64,000 bases of DNA from Iphione sp. A-MEVVRFRX5 (lineage: Eukaryota): the NCBI GenBank assembly GCA_976226885.1, contig OZ320316.1, positions 89,094,001 through 89,158,000 on the forward strand. Direction: 5' to 3'. Numbering within the stretch: position 1 is the first letter of the stretch; each line of letters opens with the position of its first letter. The translations under genes and the position numbers were made by a program. Below are positions 2,061-58,700 of the stretch, one piece after another. The notes beneath the pieces are model-generated. The model did no database searches. It was not told the origin of the DNA and saw only the letters and a list, made by a program, of their open reading frames with translations.

Positions 2061-3235
2061 AGTTTACTTGTTTTATCATCCTTCCTTTCGCTATAACCTT
2101 CATTTCAATGTTTATAGTTTGCCAGTTTTAGATGCCCCGACTGACTTTTCCTCTATAGACTTCTACTTCTAGATCCCCCTTGTTCGAAACATGTTCAGTT
2201 GGAAGACAGAGATCAGAAATCTACACGTACAAAGTAACCACGAAAATCAGGAGTCGTCAAAACAACTCACTTTCGCTAGTTGAGGAGTCGGAGGTCTAGC
2301 ACCCTCCTAATCAAAATTAATATGTACACAAACATTTAGACCATTTACAAGTATATGTAATATATTTCGATGATGACCATATGCTATGGAGGTGAGTTAT
2401 AGGTCTCCACCATTTGTAATTAACCTGAGGAACCCCTGCTTGAAGAAGTCAGAATTGAACAGCTATGTGTCCATGAATAAATTTAGGTTGTCCGAAACGT
2501 TTTAGGCATATTAAAATGAATATTTGAGGTCGAATATTTTTATCATTTACTAGCTCTGAATATCCGGTAGTATGGGTCCCTCATGATGAACTCTTTCCTG
2601 GCGCCATCTGGTGTTTCAGGACATCACAACGCTGTGCTCTGGGTAACAAAAATATACTTGAACGAATACATCGACAGACCAGCCTCATATTTCTACTCTA
2701 TTTGTCTGACATTGTGGACGGTTCTGTTGTACCATTCAAATTCAACAACCACATTCTACCCCCTCCCCTAAACACAAGCTCAAGCACACACACAACACAG
2801 CAAAGTTTAATGCCTGACACGTCAGCCCGGTCGGCACTATCCTGTGTCCATCTCTTGGAATGGCTGGAAAACAATGTTCGGAACAGCCACACAGCATCTA
2901 TCAGAGAGAGGAACAAATAAGAGGTTGACATTTGCATGACGTGAGTGTCAGACATAAATCCTGCCCCCCCCCACAACTACCTATACGACATAACCACTAT
3001 CCAACAAATGCAACAGATACTCATGGAGATGCAATTGCAGTATGCAATCCCAATGTCACCGAATGACATAGGTTAGCTATCCACCAGGGGATCGCAGGGT
3101 ATTGTGTGCATATAGTGGCCCCCTCTGCAGGCGAGGCCAGACATATATCTATTTCTGGCCTCGCGATCGACACTCAAGCTGTTGTTGTCAAGCTGTTGTT
3201 GTCGTTGTGGACGGACGTGTGCGTTCACCGTGAGA

Positions 3236-4192
3236 ATGCCCGACACGCCAAAAACGTTTGGTTCAGAGGAAGAGGCGCTTCTTACAAAGCTGGTAATGAA
3301 GATAGAGGATCTCGAGAAGAGGTTGGACCAGCTGCAAGTACAGCCAGAACAGAAGAAGGGCAAGAAGCACACCGTTTCCTCCGTGTTGACCAGAGCGGCA
3401 GCGGCTAAAATGGCTGACCAGCCATCGACCTCCGGTGCCTGTGCAGACGACTCCACTAGTCAAGACAGCACAACAGACCCTCCACCACAGCCTACTACTC
3501 TCAAAGCTGATGCTGCTTCAAAAATAAAAGAAGTCTTCAGCCACATGTATCCAGAGGCCTTAGAGACAGTAGGTAAGAAGATGGCCAGACCGCACCCTAC
3601 TTCTTACATAGTATTTCACAAGTCAGATAAGCCAGAATTGCGTGCCTTCACCTTTCCCCAATACGTTACCTCCATTATGGCCATGCTGCTTGACTCTTCA
3701 ATAGTGTACCCAGCTGACTTTTTCACGATGATAAGTCACATTAGAGACACAGCAGAGGAGGTGCAGGCTAACGGTTGGCCTCCAATTCGTGACTGGCTTG
3801 TCGAAGTCTGGCATCTGACAGGCAACGATAGGCTACAGTGGTCCGATACAGCAAGAATACAGACAATTCGCAATAGATGCATTAATGCTTATTCAAGGGT
3901 TAATCGTGAGCAGACAGCCCCACAGAAAGACTCTGTTGCTCCCTGCCCACAATGGTATTCAGGAAAGTGTAGTGAAACCTCGCCACATACTTCTGAAGAT
4001 ATGATGTTTTCACACATATGTCCATTTTGTTTAATCCTACATAATAAGCACCTGGAGCACAAGCTCGATCAATGCAGATCAAGGAAGAAGGCAGCCCAGA
4101 TGTCCCAGGCAGAACGTCCAACAACGAAACCGTGGTCAGCACAGCAGCCCAGAGACCAGAGACAGCAGAGGACAGATGCCCAGGACTGGTAG
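3236..4192 (+). CDS. gag: Intact DIRS/Ngaro-type gag-like protein (318 aa from ATG 3236); no intact pol or YR follows
   Basis: Coiled coil (MKIEDLEKRLDQLQ), core GWPPIRDWLVEVWHLTGNDRLQWSDTARIQTIR, and Cys/His knuckle CPQWYSGKC...H...HICPFC...H...C resembling gag of invertebrate YR retrotransposons. Confidence 0.8.
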   Translation: MPDTPKTFGSEEEALLTKLVMKIEDLEKRLDQLQVQPEQKKGKKHTVSSVLTRAAAAKMADQPSTSGACADDSTSQDSTTDPPPQPTTLKADAASKIKEVFSHMYPEALETVGKKMARPHPTSYIVFHKSDKPELRAFTFPQYVTSIMAMLLDSSIVYPADFFTMISHIRDTAEEVQANGWPPIRDWLVEVWHLTGNDRLQWSDTARIQTIRNRCINAYSRVNREQTAPQKDSVAPCPQWYSGKCSETSPHTSEDMMFSHICPFCLILHNKHLEHKLDQCRSRKKAAQMSQAERPTTKPWSAQQPRDQRQQRTDAQDW

Positions 4193-48184: not shown

Positions 48185-51100
48185 AAAACTTTTATTTCAT
48201 TTGTAGATGACATACTTATAGTATTTACATCCAACAATCCTTTTTCACATTAGCATGATAACAAGTGACAATGATAATGATGATATAGGGAAAGACAATA
48301 TGATGTATTTTAGTAACAACACATTTTCTTTAGGATAACCGTAGTATCATGTACACATGAGTGCATACTTCATGGGACTGCCATCACAGAATATTTTCTA
48401 CATTCATAACACATTTGTACAGAGTCATGAAGTACGTCACAGTCAACTAAGGCACTTTTAAAGATAGGATATGCTTTCTGGTTAACTTATTAATACTAGA
48501 CCAGAACTCCTTGTGATTTTTTGTTCTTAGATCGTTTGGGAGTTGCTCCCATAGCTTATAACATGTGTACTCAATCAATTTTTTATAGGCTTCAAACTTA
48601 GGCCTATTTACCACTAAGACTCTCCTGTTTGTAGTTCTTGTATTTTACCCTGGTTGTTTTTTCACGGTTGATTATGATATGAGAGCATGTACAATCTTTT
48701 GTCTCTTTTGGCTAAGAAGCCATTTAACACCTCCTCCCCGGATACATACTTGTTGCCATAGGCACAGTTTATGATAGTTTTTCTACAAGTGATCATCTTC
48801 CTAAATGACGCTGCATGCTCATTGGTGTGTACAGATATACCGTAGTCACCTACCGGTAGAACCATAGTTTTTGCAACCCGCAGTGCATGATTGGTGTTAA
48901 TAAAGCGTCTTACAATTTGGAAATGAGACAGCCTTTGGTATAGACTTCTAGTTATTAACCTTTGTTGCTTTTCCATTTTCAATCTACTATGGAGGACAAC
49001 CCGTAGATAGGTTTCTTCATTTACAACACTTATATTCGTACCTCCTAATGTGACAACTCGCAGGACGTTGTCTGTTTCTCTACCATAATGGAAGTGGATA
49101 ATATATGTTTTGTTTGTGTTGAGTAATAATATCCATGCTTTTTTTTTTGCCATGCTTTTTGTCCATGCAATCAAACTGGCCAGATCTTCCTTTAGTTTAC
49201 ACATGGCATCTGTGACATCATCACCAGATGTAATCATGGCAATGTCATCTGCATGCATATATATCCTGGAATGTTTTACAGAACTAGGGATTGAATTAAT
49301 AAAAAGTGTAAAGAAGAGGGGGCCCAAGTGGATCCTTGTGGGACCCCACACGTTATGGGCCCCCTCCTCGACAAGGTATCATTACTTTTTACTTGCTGTG
49401 TTCGACCTGCTAAGTAATGCTTAATCCACTCTAAATTACATTGCGAAAGATTGATTTTACTAAGCACAAACATAAGGATACTGTGGTTGACTGAATCGAA
49501 TGCCTTCTGCAGGTCTATGAAAGCTCCTAAAACAGTCTTTTTATTGTTTAAGCCTTTGTGCACTGTATTCATCAAATCTATGATAGCCATCTCAGTCGAG
49601 TGTCACTTCCGAAAGCCATATTGATTACGGCATAGAATTTTGTTACTTTCTACATAATTGTATAATTTTGTGTGAACAACTCGCTCTTGTATTTTTCCTA
49701 CAAAATTTAATAAACTGAATGGGTGGTAATCGCCTGGTTCCATTGCAATTTTCCTTTTTGGGATTGGTACAATAATACTTGTCTTCCAATCCGGTGGTAT
49801 TTCTCCAGACATAAAACCCTTGTTATACAGACATGTCAGTATTCCAGGATTATTCAAGAATATTTTCTTAATCACTCCCTGCTGGATATCACTTATGCAT
49901 GAGGTCTTAGAATCCAAGAATGTCTTAATTGCATGTATAACCTCCTCATCTGTTGTTACAAAATCATCTAATAGTGTTTTCAGAGTTGGCAATTTAATTT
50001 CATTTAAAGTCAGAGTGTTAGTTGGGTTTATTTTTTCCATGATTTTATTACCAATATTACTATAGAATGAGTTCAGGTGAGAACACACATTTTCTCATGC
50101 AGTAGGCATGTTATTCTGGACCAGCTTAATTTCATTATCTCCGAATATACCATACCCTAGACTTGTTTTAATAAATGCCCAGTACTTTCTCCTATCTCCG
50201 TACAGCTCATCTGCCTTTTCCACGATGTATCTCCTCTTGTCCTGTCTTACAGCATACATAACAGATTTCCACTTCATTCTAAAAATCAACCAGTCTTCTA
50301 TCTGCTTAGTTTTAAGTGCTCTACGATGTAAAATGTTTCGTTCCTTTATTTTTTGCCTAGATTCCTCTGTCATCCACACATTCTTTGGTTGTTTTATCTT
50401 CATTAATCTTTTCGGATTAACATCATCAAAGTAGTTTACAATCAGTGACTGAATTTTTGACCAACCTAGTGATACCATACAACCAAAGATATTCACTTCA
50501 GTCAGCAACTTTGATACATTGTTGACAAAAATTTCCTCATTAAACTTCCTTCTACTTCTCACCAGCCATTCCTTAGTATGCACTTGTGGAAATTTTGAAA
50601 GTTCACACATAACCATATGATGATCACTCAATGACATTTGTTCAACAGTTGTTATTAAAGATTGTGTAGTGATATTAGTGATTACTAAATCAATAAGTGT
50701 GTGTCATCATTGAGTCTCACGAGTAGGCACATGTATCTTCTACTGACAATTATGCTCATCCAGAAAGGTAAACAAACGTCATGGGGCAATTTTTGACTTG
50801 ACTTATATATTTATATTGAGATCACCAATAATGATTATGTCTCTTTGTACTCAGAATTAGAATTGTTAGTTATCATCTCCCGTAGCTCGGATAGACAGTT
50901 TTCGACATTCCCTGGTGGGGGACGATATACACCACATATAATCAGTTTCTTTCCATTTTTAAGCGACAATTATGCTCATCCAGAAAGGTAAACAAACGTC
51001 ATGGGGCAATTTTTGACTTGACTTATATATTTATATTGAGATCACCAATAATGATTATGTCTCTTTGTACTCAGAATTAGAATTGTTAGTTATCATCTCC

Positions 51101-51456
51101 CGTAGCTCGGATAGACAGTTTTCGACATTCCCTGGTGGGGGACGATATACACCACATATAATCAGTTTCTTTCCATTTTTAAGCGACAATGTTAGCCATA
51201 CACATTCCAGGTCAATAGAAGGAAATGACATCGCATCTAAGAGGTCAATTTCAGTACTTAAAATATCTCTGTAGAATATTAATATTCCACCACCCGTTTT
51301 AGTGCTTCTGTCCTGTCGTATAAATTTATAACCATCAATTACATAGAGACTGTCAGGTATGTTTTCATTTAACCATGTTTTAGATAAAATAAAAATATCT
51401 AAGTTTTTTTCTAATATTATTTCCTTTACTAAGTCATGTTTATAGCGAAGACTCCG
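48185..51456 (-). mobile_element. Decayed CR1/L2 LINE ORF2 (APE + RT + 3' UTR), interrupted at its 5' end by the Ngaro element
   Basis: Minus strand: IRSLRYK...LDIFILSKTWL...DGYKFIRQDR...GGGILI, YRPP, GDLN, LIDLVIT...SDHH, YHPFSLL, QYGFR, FIDLQKAFDSVNH, GVPQGS (about 49333-49347), HADD, LWEQLP; AATAAA near 48190-48195. Split over the ORFs 50095-50637, 49603-50088, 49276-49590 and 48662-49351. Confidence 0.95.
50745..51190. repeat. Perfect 220-bp tandem duplication inside the LINE APE domain
   Basis: 50745-50964 equals 50965-51184 by eye; GACAAT at 50745, 50965 and 51185 bounds the units. Confidence 0.97.
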
Positions 51457-51611
51457 TATATATATGAATGATAAATAGGATATTTATTATAGTATATGTA
51501 TGTAACCATCCACTTGTTGCTGTGCTAAGAGAGTTGCTATGTAACCATAGAGCCGATGTCGTCATGTTCCATTGTCAACGGATTCACTCAGCCAGTCGCT
51601 TTTAAATTTTT
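51457..51611 (+). repeat. Split direct repeat A1 (5' end of the element)
   Basis: TATATATATGAATGATAAATAGG...GCTTTTAAATTTTT, identical by eye to 55460-55614. Confidence 0.97.
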
Positions 51612-51640
51612 CGGTCGTGATTCCTACAGCAGGAGATATC

Positions 51641-52486
51641 ATGGGGAAATTTTGCAAAAAGTGTGGTGTGAACCACCCCCCACCAGTTGGGAAAGCCTGC
51701 AAAGAGGTGTCAGAAGGCGACGGGAAGCTAAATGAAGCTACTGGTTTGGAGAATATGTCAGAATTTACCAGTCGTTTGGATCGCTTAGAGGGGCTGATCG
51801 AGACTTTGGTTACAGCAAAGGGCGGTGACCAAGAGAAGAAACCATCAAGTCTTCAAGCCCAGACTGACGATTCCAGTGAGGAAGAATCAGATTCTCCAGA
51901 CTCGGAGATTGATGATGAAGAGGCAGAAAAGAAGAGGTCGAGGAGGAGGAAAAAGAGTCTCGGTAAGAAAGTGAGAAGATTTGACATTACACGTTATGTT
52001 GATGTGGATGAGATTGACTCTTTCGAGCAGCTGATCGTTGGATCACTGGGGCTGTTAAAGAGACTTTTGTCAAAAGGCAATAATGTTGAGGCTTACGCGA
52101 ATCATCTAGCCTTTGTGGCGTCGAAGGCAGCCACGAAAGTATATAACCCGAAATCTTTGGTGAAATACGATCGTGAAGCAAGACGTAAGGCAGCGAAGGA
52201 GAGTGCAAGTTCATTCGTCTTCGGGGATACAGAACTCGTGCACAAGCATCTAGGGGTAGATGCTACCAATGGCGTTTTGAAGTCGAAGCAGATGAAGAAA
52301 GTCAAGAAGACGGACAGGATCTGCTATAAATATAATGCTGGTGACTGCAACGTGGACGGCTGTACCTACAAGCACTCTTGCCTTAGCTGTGGGACTGGCG
52401 GACACAGGGCAAGTGAGTGCTTCGGCTCTAAAACTACAGAGGGCGACAAGAGCAGCAGGACGAAAAGTGCGTCTAAACAGCAATGA
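51641..52486 (+). CDS. gag: Gag-like ORF1 of the Ngaro element (281 aa from ATG 51641)
   Basis: N-terminal CKKCGVNHPPPVGKAC (C-x2-C-x3-H-x7-C), coiled coil (SRLDRLEGLIETLV), acidic then basic stretch (EKKRSRRRKK), and C-terminal CYKYNAGDCNVDGCTYKHSCLSCGTGGHRASEC Cys/His knuckle typical of DIRS/Ngaro gag. Confidence 0.9.
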   Translation: MGKFCKKCGVNHPPPVGKACKEVSEGDGKLNEATGLENMSEFTSRLDRLEGLIETLVTAKGGDQEKKPSSLQAQTDDSSEEESDSPDSEIDDEEAEKKRSRRRKKSLGKKVRRFDITRYVDVDEIDSFEQLIVGSLGLLKRLLSKGNNVEAYANHLAFVASKAATKVYNPKSLVKYDREARRKAAKESASSFVFGDTELVHKHLGVDATNGVLKSKQMKKVKKTDRICYKYNAGDCNVDGCTYKHSCLSCGTGGHRASECFGSKTTEGDKSSRTKSASKQQ

Positions 52487-54475
52487 CGGTGCTTTGGTGG
52501 TGTGGATAAACTGGTGGTAGGTGAGGCTTATGTAGTCGAGCTCGAAGATAAATTTGTCTTATCTACTGATTTGATGGGAGTAGCCAGTTTAGATGATACA
52601 CCAGAAGCTGAGAACCCCCAGACGGTGTGTGTTGACGGAGAGATTCCTTGTGTCGATCCCGTGATGTTGGACGTTGGGAGCGTAACCCAGTCGGACAGTC
52701 GAAAGGTACTTTCAGACTCTTTCATTCATGACCATATTTTTCAGGAGCAGAATATGGACGATGATTATTTGGTGACATACAAATCACCAGAGAGTGATGA
52801 AGTTGTACGAATTTTTGAAAAGTGTGTTGATGCTAAATGTAGTTGTAGGCATCTCTTGGGGGGGGGTAGCAGCCAGCCTACTCCCATGTCGTTGTATTAT
52901 GCCTATATGTAAAAGCTTGCTGTCTGATGAGCAAAAGTGGTTTTTATGGAATGGCATGGTTAAAGGCTTCAAAATTGTTGACGATCCATGTAACACGGCT
53001 TATGATTGTGTGAACTATAAATCCATTACTGATGGTGATTTTTGTATAGCTATGACAAAGAAAATTGAAGAGGAGGTTGCATCAGGTGTGGTATCTGAAG
53101 TAAATTGTAAACCTAAATGTATCAATGCATTGGGAGCGGTTAGCAAACCAGATGGGTCACTAAGGCCCATAACAGACTGTTCCATGCCGGTAAACAAAGG
53201 TATAAATAATTACATGACATCAACTTATAAGCCTTTCCATTATAACACGGTTGACAACATTGCATTATTGCTGGAGCCCAATGAATACATGATGGTAGTA
53301 GATGTTAAAAGCGCTTACAGAGCAGTCCAGGTGTGCCCCGAGCATCGTACTTATCAGGGCTTTGCTTGGAAGCAAGATGACCAAAGGAGATATTATGTTA
53401 ATAACAGTCTTTGTTTCGGGCTTAAGTGCGCTCCTTATATTTTTTCATGTATATCTGACCTTATAAGAATGGAGTGTGTCAGGCGCTGTAATGCAAGGGT
53501 GGTAAATTATTTAGATGATTTTATTATCATCAGTAATAGTTATGATTCTTGTTTGGAAAAAGGCAACTGCATGATTGATGTAATTGAAGCTATGGGTTTC
53601 AAGGTTGCTAAAGAGAAAGTCACTGCCCCAAGTAAGGTGTGTCGATTTCTAGGGATTGACATTGATTCAAGTGAAATGGAACTCAGACTGCCGATAGACA
53701 AGGTGGTTAAGTGTAAGGGTGCCATTAACACTATCTTATCTTTAAGAAAGGTATCAAAGAAATCTGTGGAAAAACTGTCTGGGTTGTTAGCTCACTGCGC
53801 CACCGTCATTAAAGGGGGCAGGACTTATGCTCGCAGTGTCTATAATTGGTTAAATGATTTCAAGTCGAACCGACAGATGAAGCCAATCCCCGATATTGTT
53901 GAAGCAGACTTGAAATGGTGGTTAACCTTCATGGAATTGTTTAATGGTAAAAAGAAAATTATTGTTGATCGTTTTCCGTCAGCCTGTATCACAACTGATT
54001 CCTCGAGCAAGGGGTTTGGGGGGTGGTGTGGGGATGACTGGTTTTTTGGGAAGTGGGATGGTGATGCTTGGCCATTGGATCTCTTCGATCACCACGTTGA
54101 ACCCTGCCCTAGTGGTATGCAAGGGGGATTACACATCAATGTCTGTGAACTATGGGCAGTGGTTGTGGCTTTGAAGCGGTGGAGCAGCTGTCTTAGAGAC
54201 AGGATGATCAAGATTGTTACAGATAACATGACCGTTTTATTCATGTTGCGCAGTGGACGTAGTTCAAACAGACTCTGTTTGTCTTGGCTCAAAGAAATTT
54301 TTTGGACCTGTAGCATATACAATGTATACTTTGTAGTGGAGTATGTCTCTAGTGAATGTAACACGGTAGCGGATTCGTTGTCAAGAGGCTATGATAAATT
54401 AGCTTTGCATGTGTTAGGAACGACGAAGTGGATTGACACTTGCTGTTGCGGTGATGTTCTCTCCAATCTTTGCAG
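51963..54475 (+). other. Predicted 2513-nt intron joining the gag 5' part in frame to YR
   Basis: Donor CTCG|GTAAGA in Gly codon 51962-51964 (phase 1); acceptor TTCTCTCCAATCTTTGCAG|GT in Gly codon 54475-54477 of the YR frame (phase 1). Inference from splice consensus and phase only. Confidence 0.55.
52487..52912 (+). CDS. Pol N-terminal extension, in frame with gag after the TGA; probably joined to RT across the G9 run at 52858-52866
   Basis: Open frame from CGG (52487) through VDKLVV...CVDAKCSCRHLLG. There is no ATG near its start. Removing one G gives HLLGGVAASLLPCRC..., continuous with the RT ORF. Confidence 0.65.
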   Translation, partial: RCFGGVDKLVVGEAYVVELEDKFVLSTDLMGVASLDDTPEAENPQTVCVDGEIPCVDPVMLDVGSVTQSDSRKVLSDSFIHDHIFQEQNMDDDYLVTYKSPESDEVVRIFEKCVDAKCSCRHLLGGGSSQPTPMSLYYAYM

Positions 54476-54575
54476 GTCTGAGAGAGGAACTTTCGGAGGA
54501 GATGAGGACTTTGAGAAGGAATGCAGCATCAGAAAACACATGGAAAGCCAGAGATTGTCAGTGGAAGTGCTATAA
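52794..54575 (+). CDS. pol: Reverse transcriptase / RNase H (DIRS/Ngaro type)
   Basis: RT motifs LRPITDCS, VDVKSAYR, LCFGLKCAPYIF, YLDD (53508-53519), GFKVAKEK, FLGIDIDS. RNase H acidic residues in TDSS, INVCEL, TDN and NTVADSLSR. Confidence 0.96.
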   Translation: MMKLYEFLKSVLMLNVVVGISWGGVAASLLPCRCIMPICKSLLSDEQKWFLWNGMVKGFKIVDDPCNTAYDCVNYKSITDGDFCIAMTKKIEEEVASGVVSEVNCKPKCINALGAVSKPDGSLRPITDCSMPVNKGINNYMTSTYKPFHYNTVDNIALLLEPNEYMMVVDVKSAYRAVQVCPEHRTYQGFAWKQDDQRRYYVNNSLCFGLKCAPYIFSCISDLIRMECVRRCNARVVNYLDDFIIISNSYDSCLEKGNCMIDVIEAMGFKVAKEKVTAPSKVCRFLGIDIDSSEMELRLPIDKVVKCKGAINTILSLRKVSKKSVEKLSGLLAHCATVIKGGRTYARSVYNWLNDFKSNRQMKPIPDIVEADLKWWLTFMELFNGKKKIIVDRFPSACITTDSSSKGFGGWCGDDWFFGKWDGDAWPLDLFDHHVEPCPSGMQGGLHINVCELWAVVVALKRWSSCLRDRMIKIVTDNMTVLFMLRSGRSSNRLCLSWLKEIFWTCSIYNVYFVVEYVSSECNTVADSLSRGYDKLALHVLGTTKWIDTCCCGDVLSNLCRSERGTFGGDEDFEKECSIRKHMESQRLSVEVL

Positions 54576-55404
54576 AGACTTTTGTAGCAAAGCTGGGTTT
54601 ATGACATTACCTTGTAGTGTTATGCAACTGTGTATGTTTTTGACTTTCCTGGCGAGAGATAAATGTTTTTCGTCTATAAGAATGTATTTATCTAGTGTTA
54701 TTTATTTTTCAAATTTATATGGTTACCCATTGTCAATACAGGGTAATTTTGCTGTTCAAGAGGTGTTGAAAGGTATCAAACGTACAAGGAATTTCGTTGT
54801 TAGGAAAGCATCTGTGATTTCTATTGAAGACATGTCAGCACTCTGTGATACATTCGACTTGTCTAGTAAGATGGATATGATGTACTGGACTGCTATGTTG
54901 TTTGCTTTCCGGTGTTTATTGAGAAAAGAGTTATATACCTATCCAAAGTGTCTTCTTTGGGAGGATGTGAAATTTGTTAAAAACGGCATGTTATTAAGAA
55001 TTAATAAAGGTAAAACTTTCACTGATTCCTCTAGGAATATAGTAGTTCCAGTGGGTTATAGTATTGTTAAAAAATTCTGTATAGTGAATTTGTTGAAAGC
55101 GTGGAAAATTGTTTGTAAAGGTGGTGGTTTAGATCCGATTTTTTGTATCCGAGAAGACCAAAATAATATATGTTTAACTTATAATATGTTCAGAGACGCT
55201 TTACGTAAAGCATGTGATTGTATTGGCTTGATTGATGTGACTAGTCACTCGTTCCGTAGAGGTGGTGCCTCGTTCTTAGCCTCTAAAGGCGTTTCTCTTC
55301 ACGAGATCAAGTTTAGAGGGGATTGGCGTTCCAATTGTGTTTTCAAGTATATTGACATGAGTAAGGAGGATTTATTTAAATCCAACGAGTTGTTGTTTGT
55401 TTGA
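54433..55404 (+). CDS. Tyrosine recombinase (integrase) ORF3, overlapping the end of RT/RH
   Basis: SAM-like N-terminus (NTWKARDCQWKCYKDFC), FRCLLRKE (catalytic R), INKGKT, HSFRRGGAS (H-x-x-R, H codon 55246), RGDWRSNCVFKYI (W...Y). Confidence 0.96.
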   Translation: MTLAVAVMFSPIFAGLREELSEEMRTLRRNAASENTWKARDCQWKCYKDFCSKAGFMTLPCSVMQLCMFLTFLARDKCFSSIRMYLSSVIYFSNLYGYPLSIQGNFAVQEVLKGIKRTRNFVVRKASVISIEDMSALCDTFDLSSKMDMMYWTAMLFAFRCLLRKELYTYPKCLLWEDVKFVKNGMLLRINKGKTFTDSSRNIVVPVGYSIVKKFCIVNLLKAWKIVCKGGGLDPIFCIREDQNNICLTYNMFRDALRKACDCIGLIDVTSHSFRRGGASFLASKGVSLHEIKFRGDWRSNCVFKYIDMSKEDLFKSNELLFV

Positions 55405-55414
55405 TTGGGTTTGG

Positions 55415-55467
55415 AGTCCTCCAGCTTGTTGTTCCCCAATCTGTCGTTATGTGTTATTATATATATA
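55415..55467 (+). repeat. Split direct repeat B1
   Basis: AGTCCTCCAGCTTGTTGTTCCCCAATCTGTCGTTATGTGTTATTATATATATA, identical to 55625-55677; overlaps A2 in the TA run. Confidence 0.97.
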
Positions 55468-55614
55468 TGAATGATAAATAGGATATTTATTATAGTATAT
55501 GTATGTAACCATCCACTTGTTGCTGTGCTAAGAGAGTTGCTATGTAACCATAGAGCCGATGTCGTCATGTTCCATTGTCAACGGATTCACTCAGCCAGTC
55601 GCTTTTAAATTTTT
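55460..55614 (+). repeat. Split direct repeat A2
   Basis: Identical to A1 (51457-51611). Confidence 0.97.
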
Positions 55615-55624
55615 GTCTTAATGA

Positions 55625-55677
55625 AGTCCTCCAGCTTGTTGTTCCCCAATCTGTCGTTATGTGTTATTATATATATA
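55625..55677 (+). repeat. Split direct repeat B2 (3' end of the element)
   Basis: Identical to B1; separated from A2 by 10 unique nt (GTCTTAATGA). Confidence 0.97.
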
Positions 55678-55790
55678 AATATGCTAACTGTAACATTGTG
55701 TGATAGCTTTTACACTGTTGGTGTGCACTAGTGTGATCCAGTTTAATGTAAACCAATACGGAGTGGAATATAATGCAAAGTGATGAAGAT
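55678..55790 (-). mobile_element. 5' continuation of the same LINE ORF2, displaced by the Ngaro insertion
   Basis: The minus-strand frame ...CKSYHTMLQLAYL joins YIRSLRYKHDL when the element is removed, restoring the APE start motif. The distal limit is uncertain. Confidence 0.7.
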
Positions 55791-58700
55791 GATCATATTC
55801 TTTTAAGAATGATGAGAGTTGTCTCAGCATAGTGAAATTTTCTGTCACTACGCTTTAAGACCGCCACCCAGATTACATTGTTTCATGTTACATACCTACT
55901 TACTGTCTATGCATGATTGCGTCTACAAATGCCATTATGATTTTTTTCACTCGTTTCCATGAGTTTTTATGGGGATAACCGCCTCTCGATCGTTGACATA
56001 AAGACAATATGTACCAATAAACCTAAATACAACCAGTAGTTAGCGCGCAGTTATTCTATCCCTCCGACGATTGATATCTTTTGAATCGATGTCATCAATA
56101 TCAATGAATTGTCACCCTCTTTATATGTATAGATGATGATTATGCGGAATTGGATACATACATGTAGAAATATTTTCTGTACTTTATGCACTGAAGCCTA
56201 CTTCCAAACGGAGTCTATTTATAGCAATGGGATTGTATGCATGGGAACAAATTCATCATCAATCCGTTATTCAGAATCTGATCTTAAATCGAAAATAGAA
56301 AGCTTTTGTGATAAAATATTATTAGAGGCAAGTCAAAGTTCTGGTGAAATAGTCGCAACTTTACAATCTCGATTCATTCCGTCATTTTAGACAGCCAGCT
56401 GGTTGTAGTTACTTTTTCAGCTGTAGGTCTTTATCGGTGGCAACATACGCCTGGATTGTATATCGAATATGGGAGGTGACAAGACTGGCCAGATCATGGT
56501 GTAAAGTCAACTCGGCGCGTTGGAAGTGGTTACTGTCGAGGACTACCATGGGAGCCGTTACACGCTGAGAGTGCGTTCATTCTGTGTAAGCTCCATGCCG
56601 ATTTCCCTCTGCATGCAAATCAATGATGGCACTGCTCCAACTGTATGTTTCCTGCTGGCATTCAAGGAAGAATCAAATTGGGCATTTACAAAGTTTTATA
56701 TACCCTACAGTTCGACTAGGCTGCGTTAAGCCCAATGGAAAACTTTACTTTTCAGGCTTCCATACAACTGCTGCCTTCAAAGTACATGTTAGCCTATATA
56801 ATGAGGAGCCCTTGATATTTTACTTTAGCCAAGTTCTGCTTTATATGCATAACAAATTCTTCGGAGATCGAGGTCAAGTTGGATGATTCAGTTCTTATCA
56901 GGCGACCACAGGTCATAGCAGCACCTAATGAAAAGGCATGATGTGACCGAGATGTGGCGGGCAGCGTGAAGCAGGCCCCGGCCTTGAACTCTTTAACGTT
57001 GATTAGTATGCAGACCGTCATATTAGTCATAATCGGTGACACGAATATTTCAGTAGTGGCCCTACCGTTGAGTCACAGCATGAAATAGAAGCATTTCCCG
57101 AGGGTTCGTTTCAGGCATTGCCTGTCGAGCTTCACAGATTATCTTCAGAGTTTTTATTTCCACATCATTAAAGTTATGAGACAAACAACGAAGGTCAGGA
57201 TAATTCAGATTTGCCCCCCCCCCCACCTCCACCCGCTGGGACCGAAGTTCACACTAGACTTGGTTGTGGCTCATAGACGAGAGGATTTGCAGGGACTTTA
57301 GTGGGTGTTCACGCGTGATAAGATCCGGCCTGCCGTTTTGCCCCCTCGCCCTCCCCCTGGCTCTCAAGACCAGGCCCAGGGGATCCTCAGGCCATCGTGG
57401 AGTCGCGTGTCGTGCCATGTCTTCTCCCGCATGTGTAGATACGACGCATATCGATATCCATAATGGTATTGAATGGCTCAGCTTCGAATGCCCCTTTACG
57501 CTAATTAGTCCCTTGAATACCCGAATGACCCCGCGATTGGATCCCGAAAACTTAAACGCCTGAAAGATGGGGAACATTAAATGGTAGCTGAGGAATGAAA
57601 TGAAGAGACAGAGTATCCTCATTACTTTAATGACATCGTTATTTTTGGCATTTAACTAGATGGCAGTAGCATATTTCTCATTAGCTCTGGAATCCCGCTA
57701 TGTGCAGCGAGCCTTGATATTACCTCTTGCACGGAAGTGCAAAGTTGTGTTCTCAACTTGCAAGTAATGGTTCGTTATTGTGATTTGGCGGAAAATCCTA
57801 ATAGAGAAACAGGTGGTCTAGGGATACTCCAATAGTTGGATAGGTTCCTCTGAAAAGTCGTATGGAAAGGGGAAAGTTCCTCTGCCGCAAAATCCATTCG
57901 GAATTGCAACATGTTTCTCGGTAAAAGCCGGCGATTAAACAGGGCAATCGGCGATCGATAAAGTATGGCAGTGCTTAGGGAGCCCTTTGAGGTGCAACCA
58001 AAACCCGAGCAGAAAGGAATGCGCTGTTAAAAATGAATGAGATCGCACCAACCGGACGCTCATTGTCTAGACAGGTGTACGGAGCAGTGGGCTGTAAAAC
58101 GGGCTGCCGGCACATGCGCACAACGTACGCCTTATCACATGTCAGCATCCATCATTTTCAAAACCAGATTTAGCCGCTGCACTGACGGTCCTTTATCGCC
58201 AGCCTCTTCCCTCTTCATCATGGTACGTGCGAAATATCCGTCGAGGCAGGTCTCTTCAGCTTGACTGCAGGTACAGGTAGTTGAGAATATAGACAGTAAC
58301 ACCTCCTGCAACGCAACAGTAAGCGGGCACTCTGGGGGCCGCCATTTCCCTTCGCACACGATATGTCGCATTCCTTCGGACGAATCACTTGAGTGAAGTG
58401 CCATCACGTTTGGCAGATAAATGCGTCTGATTGGGCAAACATAATGTAATTTAGTCGTCTGAGTCTGATACCTGTAATAATTTAGAGCAGATAAAAGTAT
58501 AGAAATGTACAATATATTTAGCAACAAGTCTGAGTCGTCCTTCGATATGTGCCAGAAGTGTTTCCTTAGACCTTTATTTATTACAACTTAGCGTCTACCA
58601 ATTTTTATCCTTTCATCACATTCTATTCCCTTGTTCTGGGTGGACTAGTCCGAGCCGGGGCCAATCTGTGCCGTGTCATGATCTGAATAGGACCGTCATG

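Follow-up and report, generated by a model that had tools for sequence, protein, structure and literature searches.

A Ngaro-type tyrosine-recombinase (YR) retrotransposon in a 64,000-nt stretch of Iphione sp. contig OZ320316.1 (here called the window) carries a splice donor in its gag gene and an acceptor at the start of its recombinase gene. Both sites are conserved in position, phase and nucleotide sequence among very divergent Ngaro-like loci (76 of 77 loci for a phase-1 acceptor YAG, 29 of 31 loci with a gag ORF for the donor). This would explain how the last, often start-codon-less gene of these elements is made. We favour the view that YR is expressed from a spliced RNA that fuses the gag N-terminus in frame to YR. 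In the absence of transcript data for this element or host, we assign this reading a probability of about 0.7. No description of such splicing was found in the searchable literature.

Results

Structure of the element and position of the splice sites

The element is structurally complete, with the order A1, gag, RT/RNase H, YR and B1-A2-B2 (Table 1). Neither a methyltransferase domain nor inverted repeat pairs (searched in 50600-57000) were detected, in agreement with the definition of Ngaro elements within the DIRS order (PMC13465315). No other copies were found in the window by blastn or tblastn, no close relatives of the RT were found in metagenome contigs, and tRNA and Rfam scans of the window were empty.

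The original prediction placed a donor G^GTAAGA at 51962/51963 and an acceptor TTTGCAG^GT at 54475/54476 (the caret marks the proposed splice point), and both were confirmed by direct reading of the sequence. The donor splits Gly codon 51962-51964 after ...EKKRSRRRKKSL, while TCTCTCCAATCTTTGCAG^GT with its AG at 54474-54475 splits Gly codon 54475-54477. Both sites are phase 1, and 322 nt plus 926 nt add up to 416 codons. Nevertheless some points of the prediction have to be qualified. The Cys motif carried into the fusion, which had been taken for a CCHC zinc finger, is C-x2-C-x3-H-x7-C and not the classical knuckle, whereas the classical C-x2-C-x4-H-x4-C knuckle is located at the gag C-terminus inside the proposed intron. 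A diverged second gag had been named as support because it carries the same donor motif. Indeed, GGTAAGA is present in ORF 3182-4192 (G at 3572, phase 1, ...ETV^GKKM), but this ORF shows no BLAST-level homology to the gag of the element or to four gags of the other gag group, gives only a weak, biased profile hit and has no RT or YR beside it. It is doubtful support and was not used.

Table 1 Features of the element and the proposed splice sites (window positions)
Position	Strand	Feature	Observation
51457..51611	+	Terminal repeat A1 of the split direct repeats	100% identical to 55460-55614
51641..52486	+	ORF1, gag-like (281 aa from ATG; stop TGA 52484-52486); the C-terminal half is the conserved gag core with a CCCH-like motif and a classical CCHC knuckle	Core homologous to the Patella Ngaro gag (BLASTP 2e-11) and to a profile of 32 related gags, which included this gag
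51641..51962	+	Proposed coding exon 1, 107 codons plus 1 base; CxxC..H..C motif, coiled-coil-like stretch, acidic Ser/Asp/Glu stretch and basic KKRSRRRKK	Relatives share a CxxC...C motif plus a coiled-coil-like N-terminus
51963..51968	+	Proposed 5' splice site GTAAGA (exon ends CTCG), phase 1 in a Gly-Lys dipeptide	RefSeq donors in Clytia and Oculina align there
51963..54475	+	Proposed 2513-nt intron with the gag core, a spacer ORF and RT/RNase H	Corresponding introns in the RefSeq models are about 2.2-2.3 kb
52413..52418	+	Alternative phase-1 donor-like site GTGAGT (exon would end GGGCAA) near the gag C-terminus	Highest donor score in this gag; not at the conserved position
52487..52912	+	ORF continuing the gag frame after the TGA stop	No family match
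52794..54575	+	ORF2, reverse transcriptase plus RNase H, +1 frame relative to gag	Pfam RVT_1 2.2e-18, weak RT_RNaseH and RVT_3 (on 52794-54572)
54433..54437	+	Candidate branch site TTGAC (inferred only)	39 nt upstream of the AG
54453..54475	+	Pyrimidine-rich tract and proposed 3' splice site ...TCTTTGCAG	G at 54475 is base 1 of a YR-frame Gly codon (phase 1)
54476..55404	+	Proposed coding exon 2, complete tyrosine recombinase (ORF open from 54433, own ATG at 54454, stop 55402-55404)	Pfam Phage_integrase 3.1e-06; H272, R275 and Y306 (H-x-x-R and Tyr) invariant and R164 nearly invariant in an alignment with 20 relatives; 3930 relatives found
55412..55477	+	Repeat B1	92-98% identical to 55622-55687
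55460..55614	+	Repeat A2	100% identical to A1
55622..55687	+	Repeat B2	

Conservation of acceptor and donor

For this copy alone the signal is modest. A donor of this quality in the interval upstream of the gag core arises in 18% of synonymous shuffles and an acceptor-like site in 22.5% of control windows; the pair is not beyond chance (roughly 0.04). Significance comes only from conservation across the family.

Nearly every one of 82 Ngaro-like loci shows a pyrimidine-rich tract plus YAG at the start of YR homology, and a site selection that ignored phase chose the phase-1 site in 69 of 82 loci. Among 77 non-redundant loci (25-35% YR identity), 76 have a YAG with its G as codon base 1 within 10 codons of the expected site. 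In 63 of 77 it also follows a tract of at least 60% pyrimidines, compared to 22.5% of control windows (binomial 4e-28). The codon before the site encodes seven different amino acids (S, A, T, P, V, L or I) but is always N-Y-A.

Phase-1 G^GTAAG, G^GTGAG or G^GTAGG sites align at the boundary upstream of the conserved gag core in both gag subfamilies. Such a site is present in 29 of 31 loci with a gag ORF, while 10.3 are expected from synonymous-codon shuffles (none of 200,000 simulations reached the observed count; Fisher 1e-8). Only 1 locus has a phase-0 site and none a phase-2 site. Background usage of GGT among Gly codons is only 34% and of AAG among Lys codons 46%. The highest donor score anywhere in gag was not above the synonymous-shuffle expectation, so the donor argument depends on this positional interval, whose anchor column was chosen after inspection of the alignment. 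The test named with the original prediction, whether GGC AAA codons replace GGT AAG in related families, came out in favour of the idea.

A need for such a mechanism is indicated by the YR ORFs: 44 of 76 loci have no in-frame ATG before the conserved YR residues, and the median distance from the upstream in-frame stop to the acceptor is 9 codons.

Gene models joining gag and YR

As a second, independent line of evidence, three RefSeq gene models from a limpet, a hydrozoan and a coral join a gag N-terminal exon to YR at the homologous donor and acceptor: XP_050388701.2 of Patella vulgata, XP_066932750.1 ('isoform X1') of Clytia hemisphaerica and LOC144645323 of Oculina patagonica. Each has a phase-1 donor, a phase-1 acceptor and an intron containing RT. 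These models are automated and were considered without sight of their RNA-seq support. The Patella element has Ngaro split repeats. Two further candidates, P0099 and the Mytilus model P0338, turned out to be patchworks containing RT fragments and not clean gag-YR fusions. All longer N-terminal extensions of YR seen in ORFs from metagenome, Logan or ENA contigs are unspliced read-ins through the pyrimidine tract, so no spliced contig was found among them.

Discussion

According to the favoured reading, the full-length transcript serves as genomic RNA and as mRNA for gag (and pol), while a fraction is spliced from the donor in mid-gag to the acceptor at the first codon of YR homology. The spliced mRNA would use the gag AUG and encode the 107-residue gag N-terminal module fused to the whole recombinase. 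That splicing happens in this host and this copy is inferred, and the choice of donor 51963 over 52413 rests on positional homology only. It is likewise only inferred that the shared module gives the recombinase nuclear import, oligomerisation or coupling to Gag/cDNA complexes. The original prediction had proposed an NLS function of the basic stretch; a basic stretch precedes the donor in some relatives but not in others.

The descriptions of Ngaro elements that we consulted treat the three ORFs as separate, give no expression mechanism for YR and do not mention the donor/acceptor pair or the fusion product. DIRS-1 of Dictyostelium (PMC7192593) is also a tyrosine-recombinase retrotransposon with overlapping ORFs, but has inverted repeats plus an internal complementary region, and splicing in that study concerns only an artificial marker intron. 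The proposed strategy would extend env-type splicing of retroviruses to a retroelement order that integrates with a tyrosine recombinase. In avian leukosis/Rous sarcoma virus the env mRNA probably uses the gag AUG and splices a short gag exon in frame to a downstream gene, skipping gag-pol, but only about six gag codons appear to be carried, as part of a signal peptide, compared to 107-250 residues with their own motifs here, and the downstream gene here is the integration enzyme and not an envelope protein. Foamy virus Pol is probably likewise made from a spliced mRNA, though from its own AUG without Gag residues, while here only the recombinase and not RT would be on the spliced RNA. Partial splicing also seems to set product ratios in LTR retrotransposons (copia and BARE gag-only mRNA, gypsy env mRNA), which use DDE integrases encoded within pol and apparently do not fuse gag to the integration enzyme.

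It appears somewhat more likely than not that partial splicing from mid-gag to the first YR codon is an ancient, family-wide strategy of Ngaro retrotransposons, shared at least by elements of cnidarians, molluscs and this host. The active recombinase would then always be a Gag-N-terminus-YR fusion, whose Gag-derived module (Cys motif, coiled coil, basic stretch) would tie the enzyme to Gag/cDNA complexes, nuclear entry or target choice. How DIRS-order elements express their overlapping downstream ORFs has been left open in the descriptions we consulted. A conserved gag-to-YR splice would matter for annotation, since ORF-by-ORF calling would miss the real product, and for reconstitution of YR retrotransposition in vitro. 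It also bears on the idea, raised for Cafeteria Ngaros (PMC8547959), that Gag influences integration-site choice.

Other explanations are considered unlikely. The conserved acceptor may be fed from another donor, either in the 5' leader or at the stronger phase-1 site CAA^GTGAGT with its GT at 52413, which would give nearly full-length gag fused to YR. Several relatives also have good phase-1 donors inside the C-terminal zinc-finger region. Nevertheless, these C-terminal sites are expected from coding bias and are not positionally conserved, whereas the pre-core site is conserved and is the one used in the three RefSeq models. A non-coding leader donor would not explain the lack of ATGs or the fixed phase. 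Still less probable is a chance origin of the motifs or an origin as a by-product of coding constraints, with the RefSeq models as prediction artefacts. Coding DNA does favour phase-1 G^GTRAG, and the acceptor region is often dual-coding with the RT tail, but the positional donor excess survives synonymous shuffling, the acceptor is conserved whether or not RT overlaps it, the encoded amino acid varies, and three annotations in two phyla chose the same sites.

Translation of YR without splicing, by reinitiation, leaky scanning or an internal ribosome entry site on the full-length RNA, or from a subgenomic RNA made from an internal promoter, also seems improbable. The YR ORF in the window has an in-frame ATG 21 nt upstream of the AG, and 32 of 76 relatives have some in-frame ATG near the start. 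However, the remaining 44 have none, and this route does not explain the N-Y-A^G conservation at the nucleotide level, the pyrimidine tract or the conserved donor. Programmed +1 frameshifting in the 143-nt overlap 54433-54575, yielding an RT/RH-YR fusion, is regarded as even more doubtful than this route. YR is +1 relative to RT and overlaps it in the window and in the loci L001 and L002, and a few relatives (L027, P0285) have RT and YR in one continuous ORF. Across the family, however, the frame offset is 0 in 10 loci, +1 in 19 and +2 in 23, and the RT stop lies anywhere from 188 nt before to 105 nt after the acceptor; no conserved geometry exists. TGGTAA motifs just upstream of many acceptors were also considered as donors of a mini-intron joining RT to YR, but the phases do not fit, the distance is 10-70 nt, and the motifs look like the Trp-stop end of the RT ORF.

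Organization of the element and position of the splice-like sites

The region is a structurally complete Ngaro-type retrotransposon (see table below). A perfect 155-nt repeat and a second repeat of about 60 nt together give the split direct repeats A1 ... B1-A2-B2, and between them lie a gag-like ORF, an RT/RNase H ORF (Pfam RVT_1, 2.2e-18) and a tyrosine recombinase (YR) ORF matching Pfam Phage_integrase. The three ORFs are in three different frames. Neither a methyltransferase nor inverted repeats were found.

Positions of the Ngaro-type element, its putative splice sites and other features mentioned in the text
Feature	Position	Strand	Remarks
Ngaro-type element	51457-55687	+	structurally complete
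Repeat A1	51457-51611	+	155 nt, recurs perfectly as A2
gag-like ORF	ATG 51641; TGA 52484-52486	+	
Donor-like site CTCG|GTAAGA	GT at 51963-51964	+	phase 1, splits Gly codon 51962-51964
Second donor-like site CAA|GTGAGT	GT at 52413	+	phase 1
Open gag frame after the TGA	52487-52912	+	142 codons
RT/RNase H ORF	52794-54575	+	open from 52776, in the +1 frame
YR ORF	open from 54433; stop 55402-55404	+	own ATG at 54454
Acceptor-like site TCTCTCCAATCTTTGCAG|GT	AG at 54474-54475	+	phase 1, splits Gly codon 54475-54477
Repeat B1	55412-55477	+	about 60 nt, recurs as B2
Repeat A2	55460-55614	+	
Repeat B2	55622-55687	+	
Solitary ORF	3182-4192	+	336 codons; GGTAAGA at 3572, phase 1
String of ORFs	48662-50637	-	one with a weak RVT_1 match
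Tandem duplication	50745-51184		perfect, 220-nt unit
GC-skewed region	52001-56000		skew about +0.22
Continuous RT-YR ORF in relative L027	2378-4753 of L027		
gag N-terminus after YR in relative L001	2674-2988 of L001		
Second RefSeq product of the Oculina locus (L085)	3001-6087 of L085		927 aa

Both sites named in the original prediction, which proposed that the recombinase is expressed by splicing from gag in frame to YR, are present with the predicted phases. The donor-like site directly follows KKRSRRRKKSL. The interval between the two sites is 2513 nt, and the two coding parts of 322 nt and 926 nt sum to 416 codons. A branch-site-like TTGAC lies 39 nt upstream of the AG. Nevertheless, the Cys motif of the putative exon 1, described as CCHC in the original prediction, is C-x2-C-x3-H-x7-C, while the classical CCHC knuckle of this gag is at its C-terminus, inside the proposed intron. 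Furthermore, the YR ORF has its own ATG, and a second phase-1 donor-like site is found in gag.

In this copy alone the two sites are not more than would be expected by chance. With the amino acid sequence held fixed, a donor this good in the relevant part of gag arises in about 18% of synonymous shuffles, and an acceptor-like site arises in 22.5% of control windows. The case therefore rests on relatives.

Conservation of the acceptor and donor sites among relatives

The YR has no close relative in the protein collections; the best hit among 3930 is 35% identical. A profile scan of metagenome contigs returned 80 Ngaro-like loci, and five more loci were obtained by protein look-ups. Nearly every locus has a pyrimidine-rich tract followed by YAG at the very start of YR homology. 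A picker blind to phase chose a site whose G is codon base 1 in 69 of 82 loci. After removal of near-duplicates, 63 of 77 loci have at least 60% pyrimidines plus a phase-1 YAG within 8 codons of the expected point, while control windows inside the YR ORF reach 22.5% (binomial 4e-28). With a relaxed tract criterion the site is present in 76 of 77 loci. The codon before the site encodes Ser, Ala, Thr, Pro, Val, Leu or Ile, but is always N-Y-A, and the next base is G or A in 57 of 63 loci. This is the signature of a 3′ splice site and not of a conserved peptide. In a few relatives (locus L027 and protein P0285) RT and YR form one continuous ORF, yet the pyrimidine tract and the phase-1 CAG are still present at the YR start.

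The donor is conserved in position. In 27 of 30 gag ORFs the best donor-like site is phase 1; however, coding bias alone produces this pattern, and the maximum score is not above the expectation from synonymous shuffles. Alignment of 32 gag proteins was more informative, since phase-1 G|GTAAG, G|GTGAG, G|GTAGG or G|GTATG sites line up at the boundary just upstream of the conserved gag core in both gag subfamilies. In a 72-codon window ending at that boundary, 29 of 31 loci have a phase-1 donor scoring at least 6.5, while synonymous shuffles predict 10.3 (none of 200,000 simulations reached the observed count; Fisher 1e-8). Only one locus has a phase-0 site in this window and none has a phase-2 site. 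Background usage is only 34% GGT among Gly codons and 46% AAG among Lys codons.

The diverged second gag of the original prediction, put forward as further support because of its GGTAAGA, adds no weight. The motif is indeed in phase 1 within ...ETV-GKKM, but the solitary ORF shows no BLAST similarity to this gag or to four gags of the other group. Its Cys/His-rich C-terminus loosely resembles Ngaro/DIRS gag tails, it gives only a weak, compositionally biased profile hit, and no RT or YR lies nearby.

Alternative routes to YR expression

In 44 of 76 loci there is no in-frame ATG between the upstream stop and the first conserved YR residues, and this stop lies a median of 9 codons before the acceptor. 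The YR frame relative to RT is 0 in 10 loci, +1 in 19 and +2 in 23, and the RT stop lies from 188 nt before to 105 nt after the acceptor. A conserved frameshift or termination-reinitiation signal is therefore unlikely. By contrast, most relatives have gag and pol in one frame separated by a single stop, or a short overlap. In 20 loci the gag and RT/RH ORFs are contiguous in the same frame with exactly one stop between them, which suggests stop-codon readthrough as the usual gag-pol strategy in these Ngaro-like elements. In the copy studied here, the gag frame stays open after the TGA, but the RT ORF opens only about 290 nt after the gag stop and in the +1 frame. An indel in this copy, or readthrough followed by a frameshift, are possibilities for how pol is reached.

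Gene models joining gag to YR in other species

An exhaustive search revealed a 452-aa protein whose YR part starts at residue 125, XP_050388701.2 of Patella vulgata. On the chromosome its first exon is the first 124 codons of a gag ORF, followed by the donor GCAA|GTATGT (phase 1), a 2247-nt intron holding the rest of gag and RT, and the acceptor TTTCTAAACAG|AT (phase 1). The Patella element has Ngaro split repeats, and its gag core is homologous to that of the element studied here. XP_066932750.1 'isoform X1' (564 aa) of Clytia hemisphaerica shows the same arrangement, with CGTG|GTAAGC and TGTTTTTTAG|GG, and a UniProt fragment from another Clytia copy contains the same junction peptide. In Oculina patagonica, LOC144645323 (595 aa) uses AAGG|GTGAGC and TTTTTTGCAG|AT. 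The Clytia and Oculina donors fall in the aligned donor column group. These models are automated and were considered without sight of their RNA-seq support. RefSeq gives the Oculina locus a second product with an RT domain, which shares the start of the gag-YR product. Its span is about 300 nt longer than its coding length, so some intron must bypass the gag stop.

The fusion proteins are listed in RefSeq as 'uncharacterized protein'. None of the examined papers that mention Ngaro or DIRS together with splicing or introns describes native splicing of these elements, although an earlier remark elsewhere cannot be excluded.

Proposed mechanism and the exon 1 module

According to the mechanism we propose, the full-length RNA is the template and the gag/pol messenger, and modest splice sites let a fraction of it be spliced. 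The donor has mismatches at −3, −2 and +6, and the tract is 70% pyrimidine. The spliced fraction would yield a messenger that starts at the gag AUG and encodes the gag N-terminal module fused to YR.

Clytia, Oculina, the related locus L034 and the gag fragment after the YR of L001 share a K-C-x-G-C ... H ... P ... C motif, which is followed by a coiled-coil-like stretch. FCKKCGVNHPPPVGKAC followed by RLDRLEGLIETL in the element studied here looks like a shorter version, while Patella lacks it. A basic run just before the donor occurs in this element and in several loci (L037, L057, L059, L080), but not in Clytia or Patella. Thus, the original suggestion that this run is an NLS is reasonable for this element, but it is not general and remains a hypothesis. 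The gag fragment of L001 (MPPKPKFCEQCK...) begins about 270 nt after the YR stop, which suggests a tandem or circle-junction arrangement of that element on the contig.

Surroundings of the element

The tandem duplication lies about 270 nt upstream of repeat A1. The string of minus-strand ORFs next to the Ngaro element is probably a decayed non-LTR retrotransposon. In addition, there is strong positive GC skew across the RT and YR part of the element, compared with about 0 in the flanks.
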